Of a stretch of 43,872 bases of DNA, positions 811 through 40,800 are shown in pieces (position 1 is the first letter of the stretch; each line of letters starts with the position of its first letter). Both the position numbers and the translations under genes were made by a program. The DNA is from Hyphochytrium catenoides (lineage: Eukaryota; Protista; Hyphochytriomycota). The DNA lies in assembly GCA_900088475.1 (NCBI GenBank), contig FLMG01002029.1:1-43872 (forward strand), in the 5' to 3' direction. The notes beneath the pieces are model-generated. The model was not told the DNA's origin. It saw nothing but the letters and a program-made list of their open reading frames with translations, and did no database searches.

Positions 811-3800
811 TTACAATTTAGGTCCTGTCATATCCATGATGGTCACTTCTCTCTTTCTCGTCTCTCCTTCTTCTGCCACCGTATCCTCTTTGGGCTTCCG
901 GTCCCATCTCTCTCTGTGGCCCCGTCTACTTCTCTCTCTCCAACCTCGCGCCAGAGCCCTGACGATTTCTTTAGCGGCTTCTTTGCAGAGAAGAAGAGAT
1001 ATCTCTGCTTCTTCTTTCTGCTCTGTGTAGGGTAAGCTCTTTATGCCCATTCGGTGGATGCAGAGAAGCCTCAGGAGCAATTTGTAGGCTTTCTCTTCTC
1101 CGTTCTGGGCAGCGCTAAAGTCGCGCTGGATGTAGCTCCTAATATAAAGATAGGGAATCCTTTCCTTTCTTGGATCGAGGCGAAGAGGAGAATTGAGGCT
1201 CTGCAGAAATATTGCAGCGGGTACAACATGAGAAAGAGAGAGGACAGAGGGAGACGTGGAGACGACAAAGAGATTGTGAGACGAGGGAGAAAGAGAGACA
1301 GAGAGACTGAGACAGACACACACACACACAGACAAAGCGCTAGGAAGAAGAGAAGAAGGAGAAAAAGAGTTAGATTTTCGAAGAGGACGGGTAAAGCAGA
1401 GGAGAAGATCTTGGCAGGGGATTGAACGGTCAACGCCACCACTGGCCATAGCACTCAAAGACATAGAATCCTCATTCTCTCTCACTCTTTCCTTACCCGC
1501 AGAAAGGCTGGAAGCTTGTGAAGTGCAAAGGCACCCTTATTCTCGCTGTCGAACCGCGCAAAATTATCTCTGAAGTCTTCCAGATCTTCCTCTGTGATCG
1601 TTATCTCCGTCTGCCAGGCGAGCACCACGTTGAGAAAGAGAGCAGGAGAACAGACAAAAGTAGTTGCGTCAATGCTTGCACTCAGGAATTAATAGATTTG
1701 AAGAGAAGACATGTCTCCAGAGATGGCCTTTTCAGTCTACTCTTTCCTTTTCTCTCGCTTCATGCTTCTTTACGTCCAACCTCTCTTCAGTTGTTAATAT
1801 GTTCGGGTTTTCTCTCTCTCTCTCTCCTGTGAAAGTCTCTCCGGGGCTGACCTTGACACAGACTGCTGTAAAGCTTTCAATGATGAGAGCCACGAAGACA
1901 TTGAGCAGCAGTATATTGGAGAGAAGATGGAAGGAAGAGAAGAAGACAGCCGAGCCGACCACTGAGCCGCAGTCGCCGTTTACAGTGCAATATGGAGGCC
2001 GCACCTAGAAGAGTATATTCAGGCGGTTCAACACAGAGTTAAAAGGCAAAGAGAGAGATGCTTTGGTGAGTGCAAAAAATGGCTATAGAATGAGACGGCA
2101 GATAGAGCCAGGACTACAGAAAATCTCTGCTCATGAAGGCGAAGAGAGAAAAAGGAGCCAGGAGAGAGCTCCAGACGACGACACAGAGAGGGAGAATCGT
2201 TACCATGCTGTCTCGCATGATGAGGTGCCACTCATCGTTAGAGGTGAGCTGGAACATTAGCAGCAGCGCCTTGGCGATCGTCGAGAAGTTTGAGTTATCA
2301 TTAAGAAAGTACCCAAACTTCGTAGACCCAAAGATCTGGTCGCAGTCAGGGTGAAGCGACAAAGAGGAGTAAGAAAGGAGAGAAAGAGAGAGAGACACGA
2401 GAGAGGGAGAATATCGTAGAAAGCGCCACAGCAAAAAAAGAGCAAGGGCAGCTTAAGACTCTATATTGCCATCCCTAGGATTACTCGCTAAAAGCAGTAG
2501 AGCTAAGAAAGGAGAATACGATATGAACTTAGCGCCATCGAAGCAAACGGGGCCGCAATAAGATGGCAACCGTGGCACAATCAGAGCAGGGGCACGACTA
2601 GGAGACAACACTGAGAAGGAAGTACAGAGGAGAACACCCGGAGTCCCAAAGACAGAGAGAGGTTAGGGATCAAAGAAAAGGAAGTGAGAGAAAGACACAG
2701 ACAACCAAGTGTGTTTGTGATAAAAAGCAGCGATACTAAGAGGGGAGAGGGCTCCACGTACAACTCTTCCGATGCAGGCGTAGAGAAAATGTACAAGGAA
2801 GATCAGGACCACAAGGCTGTAAATGGAAGGGAAAGCAATTCGAACTGTCCGGATGACCTGCATCAAAGGAGGGATGCGAGGGATCAAGCGCATATACCTG
2901 CGAGATAGAGACAGAGACAGTTTAGAAACCAAAGTGAGAAAGAGCGTAAGAAGAATTAGAAAGAAAGAGGGGATGAGAAGAAAAGAAAGGAGAGTCGAAG
3001 TGCGAGGAAAGGTGGCACCTCAAGTATAGAAGGGCAAAGAAGGTTGCGCCTCCTCTCTATGAAAAAGAGAGGCAAGGGACCGAAGCCGCAAAGGAGAGCA
3101 AGGTTACATTCAAGGGGCCCAAGGAAGACACATGGCAGATACCATAGGAATTGGATAGGGCCACCGAGGGAGAGAACAGGCAGAGAAGAACGTGACATGA
3201 AACAGAGATGCTAGGTGAAGGAGAAAAGACCCTACAAAAGGGCGAGATTCCTCACCTTCCCATCCTAAACAGTCGATTCCATTGCCAAGGAAGAGATGTC
3301 CTGATGGCGGTACCCGGATCTTCATAAGACCAAGGCCCAAAGGTGACACCGCCCAACATCATCACAAAATCGAAGAGATTCTTACTGTCTTGGAAGTAAC
3401 CCCGTCCCAAAGCGAGAGAGTGGACCAGGACCTCAACGAAATAGCAGGAGAGAAAGAAGAAATCCAGGTCCTACAATAGGCATAGATAGAGACGCGGAGG
3501 TGAGAGAGAAAATGACAAAGAGAGAAAGAGCGACAGAGACACAGCAGGGGAAAGATATGCTAAGGTTGAAGTTGAAGGGGAAGGAAGAGAAGGTCAAAAG
3601 AGAGAAGATGTTATTCAAGCGTTCAAGGGAAAGAGAGCTATCGAGAGAAAGGACCAGTTTCTCTCTTCTCTAACCTTCAACAGGCTCGCATAGGAATGGT
3701 CGGCCTCTCTGTAGGAGAGGCACATGATGATGACACTCAGGGTGGTCCAAATGATAGAGAAGCGCTTGAAATAGCGATCTAACCGATAGAAAGAGAGAAT

Positions 3801-5569
3801 TTAGAACGAGCGCAGGAGAGAGGACGCAGCAATAAGTTGCTAGGGCAGTAGACCCAAGATCTCGTAGAAAAGAGGTAAAGAGCCAGCCAGAGCCGCATTC
3901 CCTTACCTCCAAGAGGGCCCAAAGTGGAGAGATAGAGTTTGGGATAAGAGGAGAGAGTGAAAGACAGAGCTTGAGAAATAGACCAAGAAGTCGGATCACG
4001 AAGAGAGAAGGTTTACTGGTACGGAGATATTAAGGAGCCATACGTCTGTATATTGCGAAGCACTTGCTTCTGATTACGGCTGTTGCTGGAGGTGCCCGGA
4101 TAGCGCGCAGAGGGAATCCGCGCATCATGAACGCGAGCTCCATCCACCTAAAAGTGGAGAGGTGAAGGGAGTCCCGGTGGGAAGAGAGAACGAGAACGAG
4201 GCCATCAATCGAGAATGACAGAGTCAAGGATCAGTACGGGACAGTAAGTGAGTCAAGGCTGTCACCCAGATATTGGAATGACAGATGAAAAGGGAAAGAG
4301 AGGAAGAGAGAAGTGTAAGAGGACGACGACGAGAATGGGCTGTTGATACCTTTTCTGGTCGGTCGTCAAGAAGGCTGTGCCATCATTGTGTCGGAACTGC
4401 TGAATCTAAGCGGGTAGAGGTGGACAAGCGTCAGTTGAGTTGATAAGCGGATTGGGAAAGAAGAGAGAGAGCAGACGGATCAACGGCGCTGAAAGGGTTC
4501 TTCCACTCCTCACTTGTGAGATGCTTTTCTACTAGGTAGTACCCTCCCTCTCCCCACTGTTTTTGCTTCTCTCTCTCTTTCTCTCTCTCGTTTTAGCCTC
4601 TATCCTATATGTACCTCTTACCAGAACGCCCAGCAGTAGGTTCACGAGGAATATTGTCCCAATGCATATGTAGGCCACGAAGAAGTAAGCCAACGAGAAG
4701 GAAGCATCGAGGGACGGCTGTTGACCTACTTCCGTCACATTAATGGCATTCTTCATTGTGTCCACCCACTTCATAACAGTGAAGGAAGGGAAAGAGCGAG
4801 AAAACCGTAGCCGTAGGCAGAAAAGCAGACGAGACAATCAACATATTGTTAGAACAGAGAGTAGCACAATTAGAGCCCCAGGGAAAGATGAAAGGCACAG
4901 AAAAAAAGGAACGACCATCCCATGAGTGAAAAGAACGTGCAGGTGCGAAATAGATCGGAACCTTCTGAGGCTATGGCCCCTAATCGCTTGATACCCTCAC
5001 TCTACTTATTATTCGCTCCAGGGTTTCCGTGATGACTCTCTTTCTCTCTATCTATCGTTAGTCACCTGCTTCCCTCCTTGATGTTCTCTCTTTCTTTGTC
5101 AAGCTTCACACCCCCTGGCTCTCAGTGGTTCTCTTCGTCTCTCTCTTCCACTTCGTTTTTCCTTTTGGCCAATGGACTTCGACTTTTTTCGCTCCTCTCT
5201 TCCCTGCAAACTATGTGCACCCACTTCCCTTCTCCTTCTCAATGTCCCACCTTTAGCCCTGTCATCTGCATCACGACCAGCATCGCCGCAAAGATGTTAT
5301 CAAAGTTTCCCATTTTAGAAATCTGCCAGACCCGCGGGACATAGAGTCCATCTCCAGAGTTGGCGAAGTCTTCATAGCCGCTGGAAGAGTAGAAGAATCC
5401 AACGCAGTCCTCTCTTTTGTGGATGGTAGGGTCATTGCAGGAGTAAAGCTATAAAGGGAGGGGGAAGAGAGAGAGAGAGAGGGGAGAGAGAGAGAGAAAG
5501 AGAGAGAGAGACAGAGAAAGAGAGAGAGAGAGAGAGANNNNNNNNNNNNNNNNNNNNNNNNNNNNNNNG

Positions 5570-5601
<32 letters not shown>

Positions 5602-8600
5602 GCCGAACAAGAATAAGAGGGCATGGCGTTAAGGGAGATACCAGAATAAGGAGCCACAGGGCAGAGTGCGAGCGCTATAAGTAAAAGAGAGCTAAACAAA
5701 GAAAGGTGAAGGGGACCGCCTCGGGGCGTAGCGAACAGTACACGTCTGGCAGACAAGGACAACAACAACTCCGTGCCTCCGCGTGAAAAGAAAGCGAGGC
5801 AGAAAAACAAGCTGAGGTGTCACATCCGAGGGGAGCCGCAGTTGGGAAGAATGACCGAGAAGGACAGGAAACAAAAGAAAGACAGACTAACAGAGTCAGA
5901 GTCAGAGGGATACACGGAGATAAAAGGCAGACACAGAGAAAGAAAGAGAGAGAGAGGGTGGGAGAGAGACAGAGAGGGAGCGAGGAAGAGACGCGAGAGT
6001 AAAGGACAGCTCGCCATACCTTTCCCTTAAAGATTTGTATGCCAACCACGCTAAAAGCCAGCGCCACGACAAGGAAGAGAACCAAGACGTTCAAGACAGC
6101 GCTGATACTATCCAGCAGATACCACATAGTGGCGCGCAAGCCAGGGCTTACCACGATGAAGCGCAGGGGAATAAAGCTAGGCAAATATCTATAGAAACGG
6201 AGTGTGAGCAACGTAGGATGTGGAGAGGGGAACCGGCGCGTGCATCACAGCGCAATGGTAAACTTGAAGGACCGCAGCAAGAGCTCTCTTTCCTTCATCA
6301 GACCTCTCTCATTTCGTCTCTCGGATAAGCCATCACTCTCTCATTTCATTGACCTGCTTAGCTATCGCTTACGAAGATCTCTCTCTTCCTCAGGCGCTCT
6401 TCTCACTTACGCCAGTAGCACCAACATCTTGGGCCTGCTCTTCATGCCTCCTTCGGCTTCGGTCCAGCTGGTCCCTGCAAGGTACGCCACGGTTCCTCCC
6501 AGGGTACAGAGCAAGATGAAGAAATCAAAGAGATTCCAACGGATCTGAGAAGCGGAAGAAACTGACAAAGACGTAGAGAACGACGCTTCCTTCTTATTGG
6601 CGCTGGTGCTTCTAGTGGCTAGGTAGGTTATAAGCGCATCCAGCCAGAATACCACCTGGGAAGATGACAAAGAGGGAGCAGAGAAAATCGGCGATAAGGA
6701 GAGAGCGAGGCGAAAGGAGAGGGCAAGAGAGAAAGAGAGAGATAGAAACAAGAGGAAGGAGGAGATAGAAATGAGGATGGAAAGACGGTAAGAATGAAGG
6801 ATTGGATGAGCGCGATAGCCGAGAGACCAGACAAGCGAAGAAAAGCAAAACATGAGGCCCAATGTCCTGCAAGAGTAGAGACACAAGCGGCCGAAAATGT
6901 CAAAGCACAAAGATGGAATAAGTACCAAGAGAGAGAGAGAGAGAGTCTCAACCCTTCGGCCAAACGAAGGTACAAGGCAGAAGACAAGTGATAGGCACGG
7001 TCGCGTATAGAAGGAAGGTGCGGACGAGCGCAGAGCCGTTGTCTACAATCGCCATACCTGCAGCACGATGAGTGCGATGACGGAGATCTGCTGTATGCCG
7101 TCAGACGATACTGGGAAGTTAGGATTGAACACTGTTACACAGCCACTCGCCGCGATGACTGCGGCTTGTCTCCCTCGCTGATACCATTTGTTCCTATAGA
7201 TATGCTGAAGAGTTACAGAGAGAGAACACAGTGAAGCCATGATCTGGGAGCTCGTCTTTTGACTTTGGAGTTGCCGGGCAGGAGAGACACTGCAGGAAAG
7301 AGAAACAGAGCCCCAGAAGTGCGCCTTCAATCCCTGAGCGTCGCGTTTCCCTAGCTCCTTGGCCTGGAGGAAGGGGACATAAGGAAAAGAATGAGAAGAG
7401 GCGGAAAGAGAGCGTGAAGGAGACACAGGATGAGGATCAGGGGCTATCTAAATATTAAGCGACTGGCATCTGGGAGCTTGCGATACGAAGGCGTCAGACC
7501 AACAACTTTAACAAATGAGACAGAAAGGGTAGCGCCGACCTCCGCAGGGGTGATCTTCCTTATGGCTGCCTTTAGACTTTCCTCCTCCTTATGAGTGAAT
7601 TGGAAGTTCTCAAGAATGGCCTACGATGCAGAGGTTTAGTGAGCAATAGACTAAAGATAACGCGAGTAGGAAATGGAACGGGGATATGTCGGGTACATAG
7701 GTGCACAACGAAGAGAGAAGGGCTAGAGACAGAAGGGTTATTAGCCAGAATAGAAAGAGAGAAGTGCCGCACGGAGTGAGATGAGGAAAAGGCAGAGAGA
7801 GATCTGGATCCGTAAAGTCAGAGTCAAGCCATATATCGAGGAGAGACGGAGGACAGCAAAGCTTCTGTTCATCCTTAACTCCCAATAGTTTGTCTATCTC
7901 TTCTGCTTACCGCAATGACAAGGTTAAGTACTACGAATTGACTGATGAAGAAGTAGATAAGAAAGAAGAGAACGGTAAGCACGTTCCCTGTTCCTGCCTT
8001 GTCCATCTCTTCGATTGGGAGACTCCATTGATCGCCAGCGAAAATCTGATGACGATAAAGAATAAAAAGAGACGCTTAAGAGATGTACAGAAGAGGGAAT
8101 GAAATGAGTTAGAGCCACACCCAAGGGACATGCGAGATAAGAAGTCCATGGGGAGAGATATTGGAAAAAGAAGCCACAATAGAGACTGACTCTGAGAAAG
8201 ATGAGCCACTGGAGAGCTAAGAAAGGAAAGAGAGACTCTGACAATCCAGACGTTGCATCACTCACCATGAACATTGATAGGAAAGACCCAAAGAAGGTGT
8301 CAAAGGGAAAGCGGAGTCCCTCTCCTTTGTTATGTAGGAGCTGCTTGGCCATCAATGTTGCCACTAAGAACACGACGAGTGGAAAGACCAAAGGAGACGT
8401 CAGTGACTGGCCAGAAAAAAGAGTGGAAAGAGAGCAAAGGGAAAGTCCGAGAGAGGATTGTGAACAGCTGGAGGAGATTGAGGTACAATGACAAGACTTT
8501 GGATCGTGCCATCCTGAAGTCTCTATTTGTCTCTCTCCGTCTCCTTGTCTTTTCTTTATATCTTTGTGTCTCCTTCTGCCTTTGGCTTAGCTTTCTGAAA

Positions 8601-11600
8601 TTTGTTCTACATCTCTCTTTTCCTTGCTAGTGCCCCCGTCTTATCCGTCTAACAAAGGTCTTACCTAACAGGTATAATAAAATGAACCCTAGGAGGTTGA
8701 CGATAGGCTTGTACTTCCTCAGCACGGCAGTCACAAGCGTCTTCACATTTTGCCAGCCAGACGCGAGCCTGATGATCCGCACGGCGCCGTAGGGCCGCAG
8801 GACCATGTCAGACCAGCTGTCAATGCCGTTAACAGCGAAAGAGATCTACAAATGCTGACATGAGGTCCTCACTACGCGTCTAAGGTAAGGAGGAACATCG
8901 GGATAGATAAGAAAAGGCAAACGCGAAAGAACTGCGTAAAAACAGTCACGATCGGGAGGGGGAGTACGGAAAGGAGAGGAGAAAAGAGACGGTCCAAGCG
9001 ACAACTAATGCAGCATGTAGAAGAAGAGCTAAAGGGCGGGAGATAGACTTTGTTACCATGTTCACCAATGAGAAGATTACGATAGATACAGTGAGGAGGT
9101 TGCTGGGCCTTAGATAATAAGTAAGCCTGGCGCGAAGAGGTTAGAATTCAGGGAAGAGAACCCAGACACTTGAGCTGGATCAAAGGAGGAGCAAGAGAGA
9201 AGAACGGAGAACTTGCAAGCGCAAGAAGCGTGACCATCTTAACCGCATGCTCCCCAAAAATATCTCCAGACCACTGCTAGCGGAGAGCGAAGAGTACAGA
9301 GAGAGAAAAAAAGAGAGAAAGAAAAAGACAGAGTTGAAAAAGACAGAGATGAGAGAGAGAGAGCTTATAACAAAAAGTATTAGTGCTGTCCTTCCCCTTG
9401 GCGATCTACAGATGAGCCGCTGTACGCTCTACTCTCACCCGAAGCCAGTAACCATCATGACGCTTTCCACGACATAAAAGGTAGCGAAAAAAAGCTCAGC
9501 GTAGAGACAGAGGCGCTCGTGTGCTCTCGTCATGCCATAGTACTCGGAGCACATCGATATAGTGTTGAGTATTAGCACTGCGTTCACGGCACGGATGAGC
9601 TTGGGATAGTGCTCTTTCACCCGTTGCTGAAGAACTCTATGGAGCGAAAGGACAAGAGGTGGCCGGAAAAAATGGCAGGCAGCAGGTGAGCTTTATCACT
9701 TGGGATTTGTGTCCTTTCACACTCATTCGCCATCTAATTGTCCCACAAACCTCAAGAATGGAAGACTATTCGCTCGATGGCTGACAACTGAATATACGCT
9801 CTGCACACGCTTCCACCGACTTCGAGCACTTGCTCCTCCAGGATGGTCTCTCTGTGGTTCCGTCTCTTCGCCGCCCCTACTCGTGACCTTCACTTTGGCC
9901 TCTTTGCGCAATCTTGTTAAGACGACGATAGACTTTGCGATAAGTCTAACTTTCCGCACACCCTTGATAACTGTGGAGGCAAACAACATGATGATAGGTT
10001 AGTTGAGCAGGCAGAAAGCGAAGGACAAAGTGAGAGGGAAGAAGGAACAGGGGGAGAGAGGAAGATATATTGGAAAAGCAGCGGTCTGCTCCATAGGTGG
10101 CAACACTTCTGCTGTTTCTTACCTAAGATGGCGGACTGCCTTCTAGCTAACCCAAGCGTCGTAAGAGGCAGAGTACTCCTTCTCTTCATCCTATTTCCGA
10201 AGGCGCTGGTAGGGGGAACAGAAATTGAGGAGGAAGGAGACAGAGGAGAGCATTAAGAGATTAAGGTGCGTGTTCGGAAGTGCGGGGAGACAGGGAAATG
10301 ACAGAGGAAAGAGTACAAAGAGGTACCTAGAATGCAAGGAAAGTTAACAAGAGGAAGGGGAAGAAGGCTAACCTCTCTTCGCCTCCGAACTTGTGCCTTG
10401 CCATGGCAAAGTTCGCCGTGATTGCCGCTGCGAAGAGCTTGGAAACAATAAAGGTAATAGAGATAATGGCAGCTACGAAGTAGAGTGCCGCTACCTGTCG
10501 TTGTGAATGAGAGGTCAGGGCCCAGAGACTAAATAGATGATAGATAAGGATGTGATTCCTAGTATAGAAGACCTGAATGGCTGTCCTTGATACCTATGAC
10601 ACGACGTCACTCACAGCGTTAAAGGAGAGATTGACGATAGCACCATGGAGGTGAAGTCAAGGGCAGTGGCAGAGGAGAGACCAAAGTCCTCACAATACCT
10701 TAAAGTAGCTCTGCAGCACAGGAACCATAATTGGGAAGGTCCACTTGTCTATGGTGACAACCTGTGGACGTGGAAGAGAAAGAGAGGACAAGAGAATATT
10801 AGAAAGACACTGTCGGTTATGGTCTGACAGCACAGAGGCCGCAATATCTAAATAATGAGGTGAAGACAGTGAGCTACCAAGAGTTGCATGCGGAAAGGAG
10901 GACTTATGGCAACAGCAGCCAATCTCAGTGGGATGAGATCAAGCAGCGATGGAGGCTGCAAGGAGTAAGCTTACAATGACCCATAGACCATGGCCCCGCC
11001 ATAATGGCAGACAGGGTGAGAGAAGAGCTGAAAAATGGAGAATATGACATTCAAGAGATGGAGCCAATCCTAACCGCGAAAGAATAGAAGAGAGACTTGC
11101 TAGGGCAAAGACTAGCGCACATTGGCGTGCCAAATCTTTTTTGAAATTGTGAGCGACAAAGGCAGTACTAACCCTGAAAGTGGCCAATAGTGCGTGGAAG
11201 ATGGTGTCGAAGTTTATGATTAGGTGAGTGGGAGCTTCCTCGCACTCCATCATAGGCGGACAGACGAACTGAATGGCATCTGCATAGTGAACCTCCTTCG
11301 GGTGGCAGTGGAGATCTGAGGGAGGATTTTTATGTCATATCAGAGCCAGCTTTTGTGACTAAGGGGAGAGAGAGTAGCGATTGTAGAAAGTATAGAGCGA
11401 ATGAGGAGAAAAGCGATGACTCATGATGAACTGTCACAATGAGAAAATCGTGATGGAAGATGTCAAGGAAGAAAGGAGAAAGAAGGAGAGCGATGGTCAT
11501 AGAGACCGGGACCAAGTGAACTGGTTGAGCCTGATAGAAGGGGTGAGCTAACCTCTATGTGAACTTACTAGGGAAAGATGCTCTCTGAAGCTCTGAGCTG

Positions 11601-13049
11601 TTGAGAAACAACTCCTGGACTCCGTGGCAGTAGCTGCTCTGTGCTTCTCCCGTACAATCTATGTTCTTCTTCGCCGCGCAGTGGAAGCTAAACGCCCCGC
11701 TGAATAGCTAACGCGACGAGATGATGCATTGAGGAAAAGCAAAGGTAAGACTTCCATGGAACATAATGATAGTGGCAGCGTCCAGCATCGACGGCGAGGC
11801 CATGAGCAGACATCCCGTAAGCCAGTAGATAAAGATGCGGGCACAAGTGTTATGAAAACTATACGACCAAAAGGCTCACGGACGTTATTGAGCGGAAGAG
11901 TAGACGCTGTATGTTTTGTCTCACCTCCAAGCCGACCAGACTGAAGCCTAGTAAGGTGAAGAGGTATAAAGACGCGACTTGGATCAACACAGGCCAAGAC
12001 GAGACCAGAGAGTCCATGATAGTTCTTATTTCACCAAAAAATTTCATAGAGCGAAGGGCGCGGATACCCCTCAAGCCTCGTAAGGAGGAGATTCCGGGCA
12101 GAGAATTGGTCGAGAGGAGAGAAATGAGAGAGACAAGCACTACAAAAAAGTCAAGTTTGTTCCAGTTGTCCGACCGAAGGTACGAATCTATCGGTCGACC
12201 GAGCAGCACGAGCGAGGAGTAAAGGGGAGAGAAGCGAGAATGGGGGAAAGAAGAGAGAGGGAGAAAAAGAGAGAGAAAAGAGAGAGAACAGAGAGAGAGA
12301 GAAGTTGTCAGTTGGGTAGGCATAAGACAATCACAGAGATCGACTCAGATAGAGCGTACACTTGTGTCTAGAAAACTGAACAGCTTCCAGATGTAAGCAA
12401 AATGAGATGAACGGAAGTATGTGTCAAGCTAGAGTATGGCCTCGGCGAATGAAGAGGTATACCGAGACTTCGTTCCAGCATGGCCAGTGTTAGGAGGTTA
12501 GACTAACAGTCTGTCTATAAATAGGAGAAAGTAGGCAAGACTCAGAGGAGGGGCTTTCCTACCTTTTCCGAGGATGAACCCTAGCGCGACAATCTTCAGA
12601 GAAGCTTCCACTGCAAAGATAATAGCGGCCACAGCGTCCATAACTTCGAGATCATCAGAGTTCCCGGGGTCGGTCACGCACATTGTGCCAATGTTGATAA
12701 TGATCATGAGGAAGACGATCATCTCGAAGACCGAGTGACAGATAAGGCGGTAAACTTGCCTTCTCAGCCAGTTAGTCTCACTTAGAACAAAAAGAGACGT
12801 GCCAGAGAGCTTATAGACGTCCTCATCTTCAACTGTGCGAAACTCTTCCTTCATTGCACGCGTCTTCTTTTCCACGGTTTCTAGACCTTGACGGAAGTTC
12901 TGCTCCACGATGGCAACGGACTCTCGCATCTTGCTCCTCAGTTGCGAAAGTCGCGTGGTGCTGCTGCTTTCTGTGTTGTCTCCGAGGCTCGCATCTTGCT
13001 GGTTTGGTGGGTTCTGAGCGTCCCTCGGGTGTATCTTTGTAACCCCCAT
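811..13049 (-). CDS. Four-domain voltage-gated-type cation channel alpha subunit (Cav/Nav/NALCN-Cch1 superfamily), more than 20 exons
   Basis: Spliced exons give four 6-TM repeats. DI: S1-S2 in 12563-13049, S4 SSLRGLRGIRALRSMK (about 12040-12090), pore NFDTIFHALLATFR|VVTIDKW. DII: pore FDTFFGSFLSMFM|IFAGDQW, S6 VVLNLVIA. DIII: pore GNFDNIFAAMLVVMQMTGLK|WVD, S6 LVNLLLGVL. DIV: S4 NRLFRMGR|YMRLIPR, pore NFSTIAKALLLMFQLTSNDEW, S6 LLLNVFVALIIESF. The C-terminus has an EF-hand-like segment (DLEDFRDNFARFDSENKG) and an IQ-like segment (IVRALARGWRER). Start ATG at 13049 (MGVTKIHP). The 3' end is uncertain. Confidence 0.95.
5466..5601. repeat. (GA)n microsatellite spanning assembly gap 5538-5568, inside a channel intron
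   Basis: GA runs on both sides of the N stretch. Confidence 0.9.
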
Positions 13050-14315: not shown

Positions 14316-14389
14316 GCTCCTATAGCTCAGTTGGTTAGAGCGGTGGTCTTATGAGCCGCAGGTCGTGGGTTCGAGCCCCACTTGGAGCA
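14316..14389 (+). tRNA. tRNA-Ile, anticodon UAU, intronless
   Basis: Cloverleaf: acceptor GCTCCTA/TTGGAGC (one T-T mismatch), D arm GCTC-AGTTGGTTA-GAGC, anticodon arm GTGGT-CTTATGA-GCCGC (TAT at 14350-14352), T arm GTGGG-TTCGAGC-CCCAC, discriminator A. No encoded CCA. Confidence 0.96.
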
Positions 14390-14393
14390 CGCC

Positions 14394-28691: not shown

Positions 28692-30496
28692 ATGACATCC
28701 GTGATCCCTGAGGAAGGCAGCTTGTTGCTCTCTTCGGATTACCTCCTGCCTGCAACCGCGGCAGTGATCATGCTGGTCCCCACTATCAACCGCTTCCTCT
28801 CTCTTCTCTCTTCCTCGTCTCTCGCATTGCCCATCGTTAGGCCAGAAGCCCGAGCTCTCTCTTCCCTGGCTTCCTTCTCCTCTCTTCCCCTCTCCCTCTC
28901 TCACTTGTCAGATAGAGATAAAGTGATGCTAGAGAACAAGAAGAGGGGAAAGAAGAAGAGCGCGTATGAGGACTCATCTTCTCTTCCTGAATCTTCTTCG
29001 ACTCTGTTCTATGATCCTCTCCGCCCTGTTCCTATTCCCTACGAGTGGAGCGGGTCATTTGCACCTTCGCTCATGAGGGTTTGGCTCACAAAGCTATTGT
29101 TCCAGCTCATGTACCAGCGAGCACTGGCTGCTGAAGAGAGGAAGAGACGGAAACAGAGATGTGCTGAAAGGAAGAGAGAGCGTCGTGTTGAGAAGGAGGA
29201 GGAAGAGAAGGGCTCTACAGAGAGGGAAGCGCTACGGAGCTTTTCTCTCTTTGTGAAAGAGAGACAGCGGAATGACCTGCGCTGTATGAGACAGCCTTTC
29301 TTAGCCCTTATTTGTCCCCCAACAGTTCCCTTCCGGGTAGAACTCTCGCGTCTCTCTTCTTCCGCTGTTATGTACAAAGTGAGCCATTCTGTCAAGAGAA
29401 AGGAGAAGAAGAGAGAGGAAAGCCTAACTCCCTTCTCTCTGCCTGAAGCCTCAAGCCGTCGAGCAGTGTACTATGTACATGGAGGTGGCTTCGTGTCTGG
29501 GGACTTTGCGGGATTCAAGAGCTACATCGCTGGACTCGCTGCGGCTCTCTCCTGTCCCGTTTTCTTCCCTCAGTACCGACTGGTAAGTTTAAAGATAAGC
29601 GCAAGGAGTTATAATGATGAGAAAGCGAGGGAAGTTGGGCGACGACTAGGAAGGTGGGAAAGAGAAAGAGAGGAAGGAGAAGAGACGGGTTCTGTCAAGG
29701 CAAAAAAGACGTTGACAATGACGCAGGTGATCTAGCGAGAGGACGCCAGGGAAAACGGAAAGAGTTGAAGGAGAAGCAAAGAGAGACAACACAGAAGTTT
29801 CGATAGAGGGGGCAAAGGTCCACACGGTGAAGAAAGGGTACTGAAGGTGGTTCTTGGGCCTTCTCTGCCTTTCCTCTCTCTCTCTCTCTCGCTTTCTCCT
29901 CTTTCCTCTCTGTGTTTGACGATCTCCTTCGTAGGCCCCCGAGCACCCCCTCGAAGCCGTAGTCCAAGATGTCCTTGAAGGTTACCTGCTGCTCTTAAGA
30001 GAGACAGACTATGAGGAGATCATTCTAATGGCAGACAGTGCAGGCGGCTGCCTCTCTCTTCTACTCCTCTCTCGCCTTCATGGTTTGGCCGTCAAACAAC
30101 CTTCGAAAGCTGTATTTTTCTCTCCAGTTACCGATCTCAGCTGTTCAGGCGCTTCTTTTCAAGAGAACAGAGTAAGAGACGTCACTCTTTCCGCAGAGAT
30201 CGTGTCTTCTCTCTTTCAGCGAGTGAGAGGGGAGACAGATGGCAAAGACGGGAAAGTCTCTCNNNNNNNNNNNNNNNNNNNNNNNNNNNNNNNNNNNNNN
30301 NNNNNNNNNNNNNNNNNNNNNNNNNNNNNNNNNNNNNNNNNATGGATGGCAGTTCGTCCCTCATCTTCTTCCAGAGGCGAAAGAGACATTGGACGAGACG
30401 GTGCGCTTCGTCCTTGAGAGCTATCTCTCAGCCACATCGAAGAGAGAGAGAAGAGAGAGAATCGACACTCACACGATTGCAGCGGGGGCAAGCTGA
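28692..30496 (+). CDS. Alpha/beta hydrolase, hormone-sensitive-lipase (Abhydrolase_3) family esterase
   Basis: Motifs: YVHGGGF oxyanion motif, PQYRL|APEHP across intron 29583-29934, nucleophile elbow MADSAGG (about 30028-30048), FSPVTDL, and catalytic His region (H)GWQF just after the N gap 30263-30340. Stop TGA at 30494-30496. The gap hides the catalytic acid. Confidence 0.9.
30263..30340. other. Assembly gap inside the esterase CDS (other gaps at 5538-5568 and 31943-31973)
   Basis: Run of N. The reading frames either side are offset, so the stated gap length is inexact or hides an intron. Confidence 0.95.
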
Positions 30497-31874: not shown

Positions 31875-34800
31875 CTAGTAGGCGATCTCTTCCCATGAGA
31901 ACCTAACGTATGCAATGATATCCTGCAAAAGAGAGCAAGAGANNNNNNNNNNNNNNNNNNNNNNNNNNNNNNNGAATGCGCGGAGAGAGCCCGAGAGAGA
32001 GAGAGAAAGAGAGATCGTCAGAACGAGCTTCGTTCTGTCCTTTCTTCTACCTGCAAGAATGTTTCTTGTTGATTTCTATGGATTGGGAGGTAGGAAACCC
32101 AGTGCCGAAGAGAGTCCTCTAGCTTCTGAAGTTTGGTCGTCCGGCCCTTCCAAACTTCCTCCAGAACGATTCGCCGGTAGAAGGTCTTATAGCAATCAAT
32201 GACATGCAAAGACTATTGATCAGGAAAGAGAGGCGAGGGATAAGAGCGGAACAGCGGAGGGAGAGGGAGAAAGAGAGAGAGGGGGTTGTCAGCCACGTTG
32301 ATAAACCTCGAAAGACCAAGAGAAGAATCTCCGCCAAGGAAGAAAGAAAGTGCATCTTTCCTTCCCTAGCCTACCTGCAGGACCAGTGCCTCTGTCTCTC
32401 TACCATAAGCTATGAGCTTCTTCCGAAGACTCTCTCTACACTGACTGAGTGCGGGGGAGGGATGAAGAGCCGAGAATCTGCGTGCTGAGAGCTCTCTTAT
32501 CTTTGCTTGCTGTCTTCTCTTTCTCGCCTCCAAAGAAGGTTCAAAGCCTTTTCCATCCACTCTCATGCTAATCCGGACTAGTTTCTGATCTATCTCTGCA
32601 GGAAGATGAGAAGGCACTGCAGAGGCGCGAGGGTAAGGAGAGGGATAGAGATGAGACGGTGGAGAGGGAGATCGGTCCACCGCGTCATGTTTCCGTTTCC
32701 CTAGGATCCCATGCCCTGCTACGTCCCTCTTCACTTTTGTCTCTCCCCCTCGCGTGTCAGGGCCTTGTTTGAGGGATGCCTCCTCACTCTGGGACTGAGA
32801 AGGATTCTGGGAATCAAAAGGGTATTCTTTCGGTTGGACTGGATCTGTCCCGCTCTCACTGAGGACACTGAGAGAGGTAGAGGGAATAAAGGAGGAACTG
32901 TGATGGGTGGTTGTACCGTCATCACTTTGAGAAACAGTGACAAAGGACGGAGCTCCCTCTTCTCCCTGACTAGTAAGTGTACTCTGCTCTCGTCGGGCAG
33001 AGCTGTGATATTGTGAGATAGACACTGATGCCGCCGCTTCACAGTTAGAAAGTTTGGAAAGAGATATTTCTTTTCCTTCCATCTCATCCTTGTCCTCTCG
33101 CCCCTGCTATAAAGATGCGAGACGGTTGATGATAAGTCAAAGAGAACAGAAGGCAAGACAAATAACTCCAGACACCAACTAGGTAAGTAGGAGGTTGGGA
33201 GTATAATTGGGAAGAAGGTGGCATGTAAAATTGTAGAATACGTGAGGCAAAACTCGAGAGACCAATGCAGAGAGAAGGGTTTAATCTGTTTCTGCTATCG
33301 ATTTTTTCTCTTACCTCCGGCTCATAAGCGTCTTCGTCGTCACTCACTCCCTTTCCATTGGGATCTCTGACTGCGCTCGCGCCATCCCCAAAGTCCGTCT
33401 GGTAGCCCAGACACCGAAATACCTTCATTTGAATGGAAGGTGGATATCAAAAGAAAGCCAATGTCACGTGGAAGACCGCTGAGTGTGAAGGAAGGCCAAC
33501 AAAGATCAATCAAAAGAGACCAGCTCATGCCCAAGAGCGACATAGTCCAGGTCACGCGAACAACGAATAAAGACGGATAAGCAAAAGCGGAATAAGAAGA
33601 GGGCAAGAGCTTTGCCTACCTCTGGATACATGCAGGATGAGCCGATACCGTTGCCAATGTCAGCCTCTGTTGGTGCTTCTTGGGTAGCCCTGCGATGCTT
33701 TCTCATCTTCACGCGCAGCAGCATCGGGTACACGACCTGCGACGAACACGGAATGCGGGAACGTACACTTTAGTGAGACATAAAGGGACGCTAGGTAGCC
33801 TTCTACAGAGACGAGAGGAAAAGACAGAAGCATCTTCATCTACTTAGATACTGAGTATGTGAGTGAGAGAGAGAGAGAGCTCCCTTATAAACTGGGCTCT
33901 GGAGCTGAACGACATGAAATGATCTTTCAGCCGTGAAAGGCAGCTCAATCCAAGAGTACAGAGCCAGGAAAAGAGAGCGAGAAAAATGGTTCAATAGTAC
34001 CAAGGCGAAGGTTTTACAAATACGAGTGACAAGAGTTAATGGCAAGGAGCGAGGGGAGGGATAGACGACTGGTGCTATGCCTTTTACCTTTTCCTGCCGC
34101 ACATGAAAGTACCGAAAGAGACTCTTATTGGAGGCGTTTTTAGGGTCATAGGTCCCCACGATGAGACCGAGAAAAGGTTCGATACCTCCTTTCCTCCCGT
34201 TTCTGCTCCTCTCGCTCTCTTCTTCTTCTTCTCTCCTAAAAAGAGTCTGATAGCTGTGCTGGTTCTGTATATCCATGACGGACGGATTGGGCTCGAACAG
34301 TGGGTGCGAGTGGTACCAGCCGACCACCTAAGGCGAAGAGAACATTGTGAGAGATAGAGGGAAGTAAGGAAAGACACATTCAAATGCACACAGAGAAGGA
34401 AGAATAGGCCAGCGACTCCACGATATTGAGGATAGGAGACGTCATGTAAGGAGAACTATCAGTAGTGAAGGTGAGGGAGCGAGAACAGCGAAGTTAAGAG
34501 CACACGAGTAAAGAGACAGGCAGATTGGCGGAAGAGTCAGACTCCACTGGAGAATGAATGAAAGTTGAAAGGCGCAGCCAACCGTGTTGCTTACCTGCAT
34601 TCCTCTTTTATCAATGATCTCTCTGACTTCTATCTCACTACTAGGGTCCATCTCCACATCAGTGCTGCCATCGTGGGCGTCTGAAGAGAGGGAACGGCAG
34701 GGGAAGGCTGCTTGAACAAAGACCTGGCGAGAAGCCAGATCATAGCGGCCACCTAGGAACCCTATAGAAGCAAGAATATAGAGAGACAGGCACGCTTATA

Positions 34801-37800
34801 AAACTGGAGGTAGCCAGAACAGGTAGACAATAAACGACAAGGCGGGTAAGAGATCACCCAGACAAGACGAGAAGCCGTTCATAAAGTCCATACATAGAGT
34901 CAACTGCGTAGGGGAGGGAGAGGGAAGAGAGCCGACATGCAGCTGAGAGAGAGAGAGAGACCCCAGGATGGGGAGGTACCTAGGGAAGGAGTCTTTCTCT
35001 TCTAATCACTCCCCAATCCTCTCCTTCAGTTCTAAGCCACTACGTTATACCGTTCTCTTTGTGCTGTCGCGTTTCCTTTCCCTCTCTCTTCTCACATATT
35101 TGTAGCTATGTCTCTCCATCTGGACCTTACCAATAATCTCAATGTCAGCCAGATGCGCATGTAAATCACAAAGGAAGGCAGCCTCTGGGTTTATATAGAC
35201 AGAGAAAGGCTGATTATTCGACGACGATGGAGAGGAAGAGAGAGCGCGTGAGGAACTTGGGGAGGAAGGAAAACCATCTTCCGGTGCTCGTGGCTTAGAG
35301 TGAAGGTAGTAGTCGCAGCTGATGAGCGTGTGCGGATCCAAACCACCGCCAGACAGACTGGACTTCACCGCACTGGTCCTTGTCGAGGACTCTCGACGCT
35401 GTAAGCAAAAGGAGGAGTCAGAAGCTGGAAGATACACACATAGAGAAGAAGATATTGTTAAGAGAGGAGGAAAAGACAAAGTAGAGTCCCAGGGGGCGCT
35501 TGAAATGAGATGTGCACAAAGCAAGGATATAAATCAAAAGATAGAAAACGTGGTACATCCTGTGACATCGATCACCTTGAATGCTCAAGGACACGAAGAA
35601 GTTAATTCTAAAGGGTAAGGTCACACAGTGAAGAGAAAGAGAGAGAGAGAGAAGAAGAGAGAAAGGCAAGGATGTGACAATATGAGAGAGAGAAAGAGAG
35701 AATCTGTTCTCTTACAGAGGAACTTGTCCTAAGCTTGTTCGCGGAATACTCGGTCCTTGCCTCCATCCCTTTGTCTCCGAAGCCATTCTCGTCCTCGCTT
35801 CCATCTGTGAAGTGTTGGTGGTCCCATACATAGTCAAGGCGTAGATCGTCCCTCAGCACACTGCCCGCACATATATCGCTGCTCGTTAGAGAAGAGATGG
35901 CGGCACGCGCATGGGATCGAGGAGAGAGGGTTTTTGGTACAGATTGAGTAGGGAGAATTTTAGGAGAGAGAGTGCCCGACTTGTCTTTCGCTTCCTCGGG
36001 CACGACGGACGAAGCAGGTCTCGTAGACGAAGAAGGTGTAAGATGATCGGCAATGTCCTCCTCTTCTCTCTCTCTTTTCTCCTCAGTCGTCATCTTCGGC
36101 CCAAGTTTCTTGACGCTCGGCTTTTTCTTCGATGGCTTGCCCTTAGGTTGGGCCTTGGCTCCTCGAGGTTTTTTGGCCTCCTTCAACTTTTGCGGCGTGG
36201 GCGATTGAGACTTCTGAAACGAGAGAGAAGGAGCAGGACCAGGGACTGGCTCCAGCGCCTGAGTCTCTTCCTTGATGACTCCCGAGAGGCCAGACTGGCC
36301 TTGACTCAAGGGAACCAAAAAGGTCTCCGCTGACTGGCTCACTTCCTGTGTGGGAGGCTTCGATTGAGGCTGACTGAAGGCAATGACTTTGTTCGCGGAA
36401 GGCGGCAGCATTAGTCTCTCCTTTATCTTCTTTTTTGCCTTGTCCCGGCCCTGCTCAGTCTCTCCTACTATGACTGGCAAAGAGTCGACTGTGTCCGTAG
36501 TGCCCTTCTCTTCGACAACCTTCAAAAGCAAGCCTTTTCTCCGCACCGCCTTTGCTTCACTTGAGCTCATTTTTACTGGTCCTTGTTTCTTCTTGTGGGA
36601 CTGTGGCTGCTGCACGGGTTTTTTCTTTGATTGAGAAGGGGCAAACTCCTCGACTTCTCCTCGAAGCTTCTTCTTTCTCTGTCTCTGCGGTCGGGAGGGA
36701 GAAACGCTATGTAAGACTGGTTCTGCAACCTTCTCTGGCACCTCCTCAACCTTTATTTCTTCTATCTCAGCGTGAGTGGTGACCTTCTTACGTGGCCGAC
36801 CTCTCTTGCCTTTTGCTTTAGAGCCTTTTGCTTTGGTCGAGAGAGCGGAAGACGGGGAAGACGGCCGAGGGCATGAAGCAGAGGAGAACGGATGCATCTT
36901 GATCATCTTAGAAAGTGGTTTATCTTCTTCGTCGTCAATTGGCTCCGCTTGCGGCTCTGTCTCTTGGATTTTCCTCTTGGTGGCTCTCTTCCTTGGTTCA
37001 TTAAGTCTCTCTCTTGCCGTTGAATCCTCCGAACCTTGCCGTGCGTTCTTCGCCTGAGATGCAGAAGGACCTGCAGCCACACTGGCAGAAGGCAGGCTTT
37101 TCTTCTTAGCCAGAGCCCGTGGCGACTTCCTACTCGCAAGCGTGGCTGTTGAGGCTCCATGTACTACCTTTGGCTTCCTCGTTCTCTTTCGGGTCTTTCC
37201 CTCTTCCTCTCCCTCTCCCTCCTTCAAGGGAGTTGGTAGAGAGGGAGAGATGTCTGTGTTGATCGGCATCAAAGTCTCTGCAGAGTAGCTCTCTGGGTCT
37301 TTTCTCTCTTCCTCGATAAGCTTAATCTGCTCTACGTTTACCTCTGGCTTGATTTGCTCTACGTTTACCTCTTCATTAGAAGGAGCAAGCTTTGCCTTCC
37401 CTTTCTTTGACCTTGATTTCTTTCTCTTCCCGCCCAGCTTTTGACGCTGGACCCTCACTCTTTTGGCAGGAGCAGTGACAGCCTCAGCAGCACCACGGAG
37501 AGTTGAGGAAGATGCGGTGAGGTCGCTCCTATCTTCTGTCTTCGTGGTCTCTGGCCTATCAGAGGAAGTGGCGAGATCAAGAGGGGTTGGCCGTTCCTCT
37601 CGGCGCCTCTTGGATAGCGGCGGAGAGAGAAAGTCTTCGATTCGCTTTCGAAGTCTGGCGGATCGAGACGACTGTCGAGTGGTACGAGAAGAGGCAGTGA
37701 GAGGGAGAGAGCTCTCTTCTGTGGCCCCTGCGTGTCCTCCTTCGTCCTTTTTGTTTGAGGCATCGTTCGCTATGACTTCTCTCTTGGTCTCCTCTTCAGA

Positions 37801-40800
37801 ATGATTTTCTCTGTCTAGCTCTCCGAGCGTCTGTTCGGTCTCAGGAGAGGCAGCCACCTCAGGAGAGGGAGACGAAGAGGGCAGGCCGTTCTCTCCATTT
37901 TCGGTCTCTTCTATTAGTAGCTCAGGTTTGTCACGCCTAAGCATAGGATAGGAATCCATTGAGGGAGAAGGAGAGTCGCCCTCCTCGTCTTTCTCAGGCT
38001 CTTCTCTCCCAAGAAAACTGGCGTCAGGTGAAGACAAAGATAAGGAAACCGTTTTAACACCTTCCACTGGTGCCTCTCCCTTCTCTTTCTCTTCTTCCTG
38101 CTGTTCTACTGAAGCCACCTGGTCCTCGGACGACTTCAGCTGCCTTTCCGGAGACACAAAGGGAGCTAAGACCTCTAGCTGGTCGTTTTCTTCCACCTCC
38201 TTCCCTTCCTCTTTGCCCTCTACAGCCTTTACTACTCGTTCTTCTTCTCTCTCAGTGCTCTCCGGGGTGGTCTGCTCCGTCTTCCTGTCTTCAACGTCTT
38301 CATTCACAATAACCGCTGCGACAGCCGGGAGCGACGTCGGAGGTGGAGGTCCTCTTTTCTTCTCTTCATCGGCCATCCTTAGGATGGAGACAGAGCCATT
38401 TGTGACAACCTTTCCCTCGTTCTCGTCGACAGACGTTTGTTGCCCATTCTCCTGATTGGTTGCACCTTTCTCTTCTCCATCTTTGGACCGATGATTGACA
38501 GAATGATCCTCCTTCTTCGTCTCTCCCTGTGGTAGAGGGACTAGCGAAGGAGAAGCAAAAGGGGGAGAGAACGGGGCGAGACGGAGCCCTGGAGCTTGAT
38601 GCCGCAGAGGACGGCTTCCTAGCCTCTTCTTACGTGCAGAAGAAGACAAAGCAGAGAGAGGGAGAGACGGAGAAGACGACTTAAAGGAAGGGCCCTGAGA
38701 AGAGAGGGAAACTGGAGGGCCCTGGAGGTTTGGATTAGAAGAGAGTGAAAGCTTCTGGCTTGAACTGGAGAAGGCGGCCGAGGAGGAAAGAGAAGGAGCG
38801 TCAGGCTTGAGTGTGTCTTGAGACGATGTCTTTGTTGCAGGCGTTTCCTCAGGGTTCTCTTCTTGCTCTGTGCCGGCTCTGTCTCGCTCTAGCTTGTCCT
38901 CTTTGTCTTCTTGCTCCCCCTCCACTGTCGGCAGCATCGCTTCCTCGGTCTGTCCAGCAGCTTCCGCTTCCTCCTGTTCTCCCGTCTTCTCCATTTCCTC
39001 AGTGAAAGGATATCGATCGGTATCATCTACCGGAACTGCGGGGAGAGCCGGTTCGCTATGGAAGACCATCGCTTTTTCCTCTCTCTCTAACTTGTGGAAG
39101 GCTTCTTCTGTCTCCACTTTCTCCTCTTGAGCTTTCTTTTCTTCACTTTCTTCCTCTTCCTGTACCTCCCTTCCGTCCTCTTTCCCGGTGTCCTTCTTCT
39201 CTTCGCTCGCTCCAACGTCCTGAAATGACATATCTTGCTCTTCCATGTCCTTAGAAAACCGCCTGCTTGCTGACTGACTTGCTTTCCTCCGTCGGGAACC
39301 TTCTTTAGGCTCACCTCTTCGGCTTCTACCAGCTTTCGTGGGCTTTGATAGATGGAGAAGAGGCATGGGGGAGGGAGACGACGAGGATAGAGCGGCTTTG
39401 GCCCTTATTACTTCCTGCTCGGCAAGGAGCTCACCTAGAAAGACACTTTCGCCGGGGTCGCTTCCCACTTCGTCTTCAGAGGGGGAGGTTGAGGGAGGAT
39501 AATAAAATGGGACGCTGGTAACTCTGCGCGCAGAGCGGCGAAGGACTGTCTGTGAAGCTCCACTATCGCCTTTCCTCATTTCCTCTTCGCCTTCTGCTGC
39601 TAGGACCTGGTTGACCTGGTCCTCACTTTCTCCCTCTTCGCCCATTACCTTGCTTTCTTCCTCTTTCGTTTCCTCTGCTTTTTCTTCCATACTTTCCTCC
39701 GTATGGACCAATTCCTTCATTAAGATTGACTTCTCATCCGTGGACTGCTGCTCAATCTCCATGCTCTCCGCTTCCTCCACGATGGGCCATTGATCCTGCT
39801 CCTTCTTCTTCTCATCACCGTCCTCCAAAGCTTCTTTGTCCGCAATGCCGCCTCCTGCGATAACTGAACGCTTCTCTTCTGCTTCCAGTTCTTGCTCGTC
39901 CATTGATTTCTCATCCCTCTTCTGAAGCTCGCCTATCTTCTGAGATGGCCGCCCTTCTATTTTCTGATCTTCGATTTCTCCGCCCTTCTCATCAGAGGCG
40001 GCGGAAGGGACTGACGTCCCATTTTGAGGAATATTTGCTGTTTCTGGGTCCTCTCTTTCTTCTGGCTGTGTCGCGCCTGGCAGAGAAACTTCGCCTTTCT
40101 CTTCTACTGTGGCGTCGTTGTCCTCCTTTGTCACCTCCACAGCTAGAGCACTATCCTCTACTCCTATTGACGCTTCTTCCACTGTCTCTCTACCAGGCGG
40201 CTGCTGTTCCTCTCGTCCAACAACCTGTTCGTGCGTATATCCCTGCTCCAGCATTTCTGAAACCCCGGTCTTGGCAGTATCTGCTAAGAAAGGAATCAGA
40301 GGTTTACAGACCGTAGAAAGATGGGAGAGGACTGAGGAGAACAGGAGGCAGACTAGGTGTATACTCCAGACTGCAGGGCACACCGTCCATGCTGTTCCCA
40401 ACCCTTATCTTCCTCTTCTTCACCTCTCATCTCAATCACCTCCTCCTTCTGCCCTGTCTTGTTTGTCCATCTATCTCTTTCTCTCTCTTACCCTCTCTCC
40501 TTACATCCTTTCTCCCTCCTCGCTAGCGAGAGCGTTTCAGACCACTTGCGTGACTTCCTCCGTTCCACTCGTCTCCATCTTACTCACCTTCTTCCTGGCG
40601 CATCCATAGCTTTTGTCCCCTCAAGAAGCGAGAGAGAGGAAAGCCTTTGTACATAACAATGTCCCAGTAGTGGTTGTTCACCTCTTCTTTCTTCGATGGG
40701 GGACTCCGTCCCTTAAGAAAACAGGCAAATCCCGACGGAGATTGAAAAACCTCTTCGCCGTAACTAATTGTTCCATCCTCTAACAGATCAGCAAAGCGCT

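Follow-up and report, generated by a model that had tools for sequence, protein, structure and literature searches.

An intact four-repeat cation channel gene in Hyphochytrium catenoides with a probable Asp/Asp/Lys/Asp selectivity filter

The window analysed here is the whole of a 43,872-nucleotide stretch (contig FLMG01002029.1, assembly GCA_900088475.1) of the Hyphochytrium catenoides genome. On its minus strand lies an intact gene, from an intron-rich protist, that encodes a cation channel with four repeats, a member of the Cav/Nav/NALCN superfamily. Judged by spacing from the first pore helix (P1), the selectivity ring contributed by repeats I to IV (DI to DIV) is probably Asp/Asp/Lys/Asp, which would make the gene one of the catalogued "DDKD" type. 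Filters of this type have already been described in protists, so the type is not new here; the feature that may be new is the residue absent between the Lys of DIII and the Trp that follows it.

Gene model and pore motifs

Exon chaining on the window yielded a minus-strand multi-exon gene, running from 13049 to 814, for a channel of four repeats with six transmembrane segments each (S1 to S6; 4 x 6TM). The model was built by listing the GT...AG pairs that leave the reading frame uninterrupted and comparing each join with homologues. It comprises at least 24 exons and approximately 1310 amino acids, figures that exclude the I-II linker, the II-III linker and the S1-S2 part of DIII. All modelled introns have a canonical GT start and AG end, and neither a stop codon nor a frameshift occurs across the 24 exons; the 12 exons between 6544 and 1497 give 550 stop-free amino acids. 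Ten stop-free pieces match Pfam Ion_trans and succeed one another as the repeats of a four-repeat channel should, with matches on exon pieces of every repeat, which bears out the description of a four-domain channel in an earlier note on this DNA. For repeats I, III and IV, the matches to solved structures are collinear as well. Given all pieces lie within Ion_trans matches, the pore motifs sit in real pore loops (P-loops) and are not chance strings.

Direct minus-strand translation reproduced, at the same positions, the four pore motifs that the earlier note had listed. DI reads VVTIDKW, with the filter Asp at 10747-10749 and a Lys at position +1 (10744-10746), and DII reads IFAGDQW, with the filter Asp at 8031-8033. 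DIII reads MQMTGLK, with the Lys at 5251-5253 followed by GTGGGA, and its spliced reading is TGLK|W. DIV reads LTSNDEW, with the filter Asp at 2234-2236 and a Glu at +1 (2231-2233). Three repeats thus carry Asp, DI carries Lys at +1 and DIII carries no acidic residue, all as first proposed. With Lys or Leu in the DIII filter region, the protein does not have the four acidic residues of Cav channels (EEEE or EEDD).

The intron at 4769-5250, which had been proposed to split the DIII P-loop, is the sole canonical GT-AG choice at the genomic level. The sequence after the Lys codon, GTGGGACATTGA, offers a single GT (5250-5249) and then an in-frame stop, while the roughly 80 nucleotides before TGGGTGGAC (WVD) form a pyrimidine-rich tract with a single AG (4770-4769). 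Given only one GT precedes the stop and only one AG follows the tract, K|W is the sole canonical junction, and the splice reads K|WVDTM in phase 0. The two ends of this intron are alike, the donor being AAG|GTGGGAC (5250-5238) and the acceptor AAG|TGGGTGGAC (4776-4760) on the minus strand; as a speculation, this likeness might reflect intron gain by duplication, or a sliding of the boundary that removed a Gly codon.

An assembly gap, the run of N at 5538-5568, lies in a (CT)n microsatellite inside a different intron (6019-5449). The join across that intron, IQIFKGK|LYSCNDP, is in frame, and it is collinear with P0033 (..QLFSGKFFKCNDD..) and NALCN (..KCNDP..), with no residue missing. Since the gap is intronic and the join is both in frame and collinear, the gap costs no coding sequence. 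Many introns between 1 and 13000 on the minus strand contain long (CT)n/(GA)n microsatellites, as at 5450-5620, and these read as SLSLSL in lists of open reading frames (ORFs).

The voltage sensors differ among repeats. S4 is rich in Arg in DI and DIV, with five regularly spaced Arg or Lys residues; DII appears, from a reading of its sequence, to have about three spaced Arg; and S4 of DIII is degenerate, its charges essentially lost. The presumed S1-S2 of DIII (7250-7046, minus strand) scores 6.4 bits against a homologue profile, and its S1 contains Arg and Gln. The weak S1-S2 and the charge-poor S4 together suggest that the third voltage sensor is degenerate.

The III-IV linker, of approximately 55 amino acids, has the canonical length (about 53-57 amino acids). 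At the position of the Nav IFM motif it presents AFL (..DGTAFLTTDQK..), in which the Phe alone is kept. The DI turret contains six Cys, and the DIII turret and the post-filter turret of DIV contain two each; a framework of short III-IV linker and Cys-bearing turrets is given in PMC6259924. Neither an IQ nor a GPHH domain was detected in the C-terminal exons, where no Pfam match was found, and the EF-hand-like loop in this region is non-canonical.

Filter residue of the third repeat

Between its NFDN motif and its Trp, the DIII loop has one residue fewer than the loops of homologues. Given the residue usually found between filter and Trp is missing, so that the Lys directly precedes the Trp, it is ambiguous whether Lys or Leu takes the filter position, and the earlier note had rightly left the register between the two. 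In either register, DIII gives the pore mouth a positive charge and no carboxylate.

Comparison of the loops points to Lys, which is likely to be the filter residue of DIII. In the spliced model, position 15 after (N/P)F(D/S)x is occupied by D, D, K and D in repeats I to IV, respectively, and the same spacing is found in NALCN. The DIII S5-P exon aligns with human NALCN without a gap from NFDN to its last residue, ending on the NALCN filter Lys1115. When the loop was compared by BLAST with the homologues from an exhaustive protein search, a one-residue gap fell after the Lys in the great majority of the best DIII alignments listed.

Several observations weigh against this reading. The NALCN alignment does not discriminate between the registers, since the query exon ends at the Lys. 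A hidden Markov model of 163 homologous DIII P-loops, with the loop aligned by hmmalign, places a gap at the filter column and leaves the Lys off it, with a posterior of only 0.6-0.7. Anchored on the Trp, DIII reads T-G-L-K-W, which resembles the canonical T-G-E-x-W. Almost every known channel is reported to have its Trp at filter+2 (PMC6259924), and if that position is taken as fixed, Leu would be the filter residue. None of the matches listed from the exhaustive search (150 of 519) has Lys in DIII, and drafts of the individual domains are only 22-36% identical to the retrieved channels (25-36% for the best of these relatives), with no orthologue among them. Lastly, no RNA support for any junction was obtained from four mapped sequencing runs.

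The alternative that survives best is the other register, in which the filter would be Asp/Asp/Leu/Asp with Lys at the +1 ("beacon") position, the ring of Trp residues fixing the frame and the missing residue lying upstream, in or before the P1 helix. Such a pore would combine three acidic side chains with a pair of Lys (DI +1 and DIII +1) lying one step higher, and its selectivity among cations would probably be poor, with some permeability to Ca2+. Besides the near-universal Trp and the placement of the Lys by the profile, it is favoured by the Trp-anchored T-G-L-K-W, which fits the canonical T-G-E-x-W frame that repeats II and IV follow and has its Thr at W-4, where DI also has one. However, it requires an insertion or deletion either within or immediately ahead of the packed P1 helix, against a spacing from NFDx to filter of exactly 15 in all four repeats and in NALCN, and against the BLAST gaps after the Lys. 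In addition, the published DDKD channels show a DIII Lys in related lineages (PMC5824947). On these comparisons of sequence we consider Leu an unlikely filter residue.

A second alternative is a fault in the gene model (the true mRNA being joined elsewhere, through a micro-exon or at a non-canonical site) or in the assembly near 5250/4769, such that DIII really reads K-G-W or x-E-G-W. In its favour, no read from the four mapped runs could be placed on the window, the 16 candidate runs having contained only 4% of the sampled words, a level consistent with simple repeats; the loop is shorter by one residue than all 163 profiled homologous DIII P-loops; and the similar intron ends could favour boundary sliding. 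Yet there is a single GT before the in-frame stop and a single AG in the pyrimidine-rich sequence, the phase-0 junction keeps 550 amino acids open over 12 exons, and the assembly gap lies in a different intron. We therefore regard an artefact as improbable. Least probable is a decaying or non-functional copy under relaxed constraint, as might be read from the short P-loop, the degenerate third sensor with its barely recognisable S1-S2 and a long branch in the tree described below, since all 24 modelled exons are free of frameshifts and stops with canonical splice sites throughout, conservation is seen in the pore helices, the S6 segments, the turrets with their Cys and the III-IV linker, and charge-poor S4 segments also occur in NALCN and Cch1, which are nonetheless functional (PMC5824947).

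With Lys as the filter residue, it is conceivable, though doubtful, that the DIII loop is truly shorter by one residue than the loop of any Cav, Nav, NALCN or protist four-domain channel described so far, so that the filter Lys abuts the otherwise near-universal Trp ring at filter+2. If true, this would be a structurally new and more asymmetric placement of positive charge in a selectivity filter, in a lineage apparently lacking sequenced near relatives.

Relationship to known four-domain channels

D/D/K/D(G) filters have been reported from the oomycetes Phytophthora and Saprolegnia (clade WSC VI) and from the cryptophyte alga Guillardia (WSC VIII) by Pozdnyakov et al. 2018 (PMC5824947), who note D/E at n+1 of DIV, liken the filter to the E/E/K/E of NALCN, and present these channels as candidates for Na+ selectivity or permeability. 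With Verret et al. 2010 as their source, Fux et al. 2018 (PMC6259924) also include "DDKD" among the non-animal pores. Hence the proposal of the earlier note that the pore matches no standard class holds for the animal filters EEEE, EEDD, DEKA and EEKE, yet the filter itself is not novel.

The window protein shares with the WSC VI and WSC VIII channels the Asp/Asp/Lys/Asp ring, with the register in DIII not fully certain, and an acidic residue at n+1 of DIV, which is Glu here (SNDEW), and they too come from stramenopile-type organisms. Compared by published S4 strings only, the DIV S4 of probable WSC VI channels (..GRIFRMMRVLRFV..) resembles that of the window protein (..NRLFRMGRYMRLI..), while their DI and DIII S4 strings are clearly unlike it; the assignment of the four entries of the S4 table (PMC5824947) to WSC VI is inferred from genus composition. 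WSC VI probably includes P. infestans XP_002897879.1, P. parasitica XP_008902841.1 and S. diclina XP_008603782.1.

NALCN has in common with the window protein a Lys in DIII, acidic residues in the other three repeats and an acidic n+1 residue in DIV. A filter Lys in DII or DIII among acidic residues is the pattern of NALCN and Cch1 (EEKE/EKEE), to which the window protein may correspond in part. The charge-poor S4 segments of those channels may likewise have a partial counterpart in its degenerate DIII S4. Of the solved structures, NALCN best fits two parts of the protein: the DIII turret with its motifs CNDPxIxxREDCxG and VPRVW, and the pore exon of DIV. The DIII S5-P exon scores 31.8 bits with NALCN versus 19.6 with Cav1.2, and the DIV S5-P exon 41.1 bits (NALCN 1356-1399, E 7e-10) versus 33.7 with Cav3.2. 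For the DIV S6 exon, NALCN (24.0 bits) and Nav1.8 (23.5) are about equal. The differences are Glu in the NALCN filter where the window protein has Asp, Lys-Gly-Trp in place of Lys-Trp, and the fully charged S4 of DI and DIV in the window protein. Within this one 44-kb window there was no evidence of the NALCN partner subunits FAM155/Mid1, UNC79 or UNC80.

Against a NALCN-like protein as a whole stand the voltage-sensor and S4-S5 exons, which are closer to Cav or Nav. Nav1.6 and Cav2.2 are the best matches of the DI S3-S5 exon (E about 1e-22). The DIII S4-S5 exon matches Cav1 best, with NALCN absent at E <= 0.1, and the DIII P2-S6 exon matches Cav2.3 and Nav best, with NALCN absent at E <= 1. 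The DII P-S6 exon yielded zero matches among solved structures. The resemblance to NALCN is real but is limited, on sequence comparison, to the outer pore loops of DIII and DIV. Given NALCN is the best match for only three of the seven exons tested, we rejected as unproven the classification of the gene as simply a NALCN.

With Nav1, the window protein shares the Asp of DI, the Lys of DIII and a III-IV linker that is short and has three hydrophobic residues, AFL, where Nav has IFM, and its WVDTM after the DIII filter resembles the WMDIM of Nav. It differs from the D/E/K/A filter in having Asp in DII, where Nav1 has Glu, and Asp in DIV, where Nav1 has Ala, and neither Na_trans_assoc nor any other Nav-specific Pfam domain was seen in it. 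The 4 x 6TM architecture is common to Cav1/2 (EEEE), Cav3 (EEDD) and bolidophyte-type channels with an E/D/E/E(D) filter (P0025, Triparma), the last of which differ in their standard L-E-G-W in DIII. In CatSper (DDDD), single-repeat subunits form a tetramer, whereas the window gene encodes all four repeats. Senatore and colleagues place channels of the SAR group (stramenopiles, alveolates and rhizaria) in a broad "clade A" with NALCN and Cch1 (PMC12412391).

The exhaustive protein search, made with the first exon, which is the longest clean one, returned 519 four-domain channel matches, none of them above 39% identity and none of them the protein itself. No DDKD protein of oomycetes or Guillardia was found among the 150 exhaustive-search matches listed or the 240 word-search rows listed, nor were the oomycete proteins found among the retrieved proteins by means of their published S4 strings. 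Two candidates were set aside: P0051, considered as an oomycete DDKD relative for its shared words, is an AT-rich, apparently unrelated channel, and P0125, used as a guide for its PRVW turret and S4, led by word search to a Cav3-like clade that is not that of the window protein. Two metagenome scans with the two DIII pore exons found nothing, and a search of the ESM Atlas with the first exon returned generic Ion_trans clusters only.

A FastTree phylogeny (LG+gamma) of 174 sequences and 885 columns places the window protein on a long branch (1.24 substitutions per site) as sister to P0025, with a support of 0.99. Both fall within a six-member clade (0.997) that includes Platysulcus, MMETSP, diplonemid and Picozoa sequences, and deeper nodes have no support. 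Given NALCN, Cch1, Nav1 and oomycete sequences are not in the tree, it is no test of family membership, and the sister grouping with P0025 may come from long-branch attraction. A word search with P0025 led to channels of Triparma, a bolidophyte stramenopile, with LEGW in DIII and an identity of 23-31% to the window protein.

Coordinates, surrounding sequence and proposed function

The features of the channel gene are presented in Table 1.

Table 1. Features of the channel gene, in positions of the window.
Feature	Position	Strand	Basis or remark
Channel gene span	814..13049	-	Exon chaining with GT-AG sites, no stops; Pfam Ion_trans on pieces
Block A: N-terminus and DI	13049-10380	-	
Block B: DII	9647-7911	-	
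Block C: DIII S3 to C-terminus	6544-1497, plus last exon 1200-817	-	
First modelled exon: Met, N-terminal cytoplasmic part, DI S1-S2	12563..13049	-	Ion_trans positions 1-60
DI S3-S5 exon, Arg-rich S4 (..LRGLRGIRALRSMK..)	11925..12187	-	Best solved matches Nav1.6, Cav2.2
DI P-loop exon, VVTIDKW	10699..10761	-	Translation
DII P-loop and S6 exon, IFAGDQW	7911..8045	-	Translation
DIII S3 exon (6544-6411) and DIII S4-S5 exon (6188-6020)	within 6020..6544	-	S4 charge-poor (..MLVLLAYLPSFIPLRFIVV..)
Intron between DIII S4-S5 exon and DIII S5-P exon	5449..6019	-	Contains assembly gap 5538-5568
DIII S5-P exon: Cys-containing turret (CNDP..REDC.., ..VPRVW..), P1 helix, ends ..MQMTGLK	5251..5448	-	Best solved match human NALCN 1044-1115
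Phase-0 intron dividing the DIII P-loop between Lys and Trp (GTGGGA...ATGAAG)	4769..5250	-	
DIII P2 helix and S6 exon, begins WVDTM	4622..4768	-	Trp at 4766-4768
III-IV linker exons (4405-4350 and 4147-4044)	within 4044..4405	-	
DIV S2-S4 exon (3470-3256) and DIV S4-S5 exon (2897-2762)	within 2762..3470	-	S4 Arg-rich (..RLFRMGRYMRLIPR..)
DIV S5-P exon, LTSNDEW	2204..2335	-	Best solved match NALCN 1356-1399
DIV turret (two Cys) and S6 exon	1864..2004	-	
C-terminal exons 1610-1497 (EF-hand-like region, non-canonical loop) and 1200-817, with stop codon	within 814..1610	-	Without Pfam match

The window has a G+C content of approximately 48% and many (CT)n/(GA)n runs. A transfer RNA gene for Ile (anticodon TAT) was located by ARAGORN at 14316-14390 on the plus strand, approximately 1.3 kb upstream of the first modelled channel exon. 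Further runs of N, at 30263-30341 and 31943-31973, lie outside the channel gene. The ORF at 35608-40401 (minus strand) is uninterrupted over 1597 codons, is rich in Glu, Ser, Lys and Pro and has a local G+C of about 0.525; it has no Pfam match and looks intrinsically disordered. Two partial domains were found elsewhere, Abhydrolase_3 in the ORF piece at 28692-29735 (plus strand; 26 bits, profile positions 1-39) and JAB/MPN in the piece at 33836-34327 (minus strand; 23 bits, end of the profile), and these pieces are probably exons of two other spliced genes.

Lys-containing filters are a known route to Na+ permeability in four-domain channels, with independent origins in Nav and NALCN. By analogy, a Na+-permeable or non-selective pore is a reasonable expectation for the window protein. 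The DIII Lys, together with three Asp, the Lys at +1 of DI and the Glu at +1 of DIV, would form a pore passing monovalent cations (Na+) that discriminates against Ca2+ or is blocked by it, in line with the effect of the DIII Lys in NALCN (EEKE) and Nav (DEKA). The protein would be a plasma-membrane cation channel of weakened Ca2+ selectivity. Given S4 is fully charged in DI and DIV and has lost its charges in DIII, voltage could still control gating by way of sensors I and IV, and sensor III would be largely inert. It counts against this proposal that both selectivity and gating are inferred wholly by analogy.

The wider question is that of Na+-selective or Na+-leak four-domain channels outside animals, in protists, and we know of no protist DDKD channel that has been expressed or recorded. 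Since the filter type is already in the literature, the gene opens no new question by itself. It represents one more intact DDKD candidate, whose outer pore loops resemble those of NALCN and whose Lys-Trp spacing is unusual.

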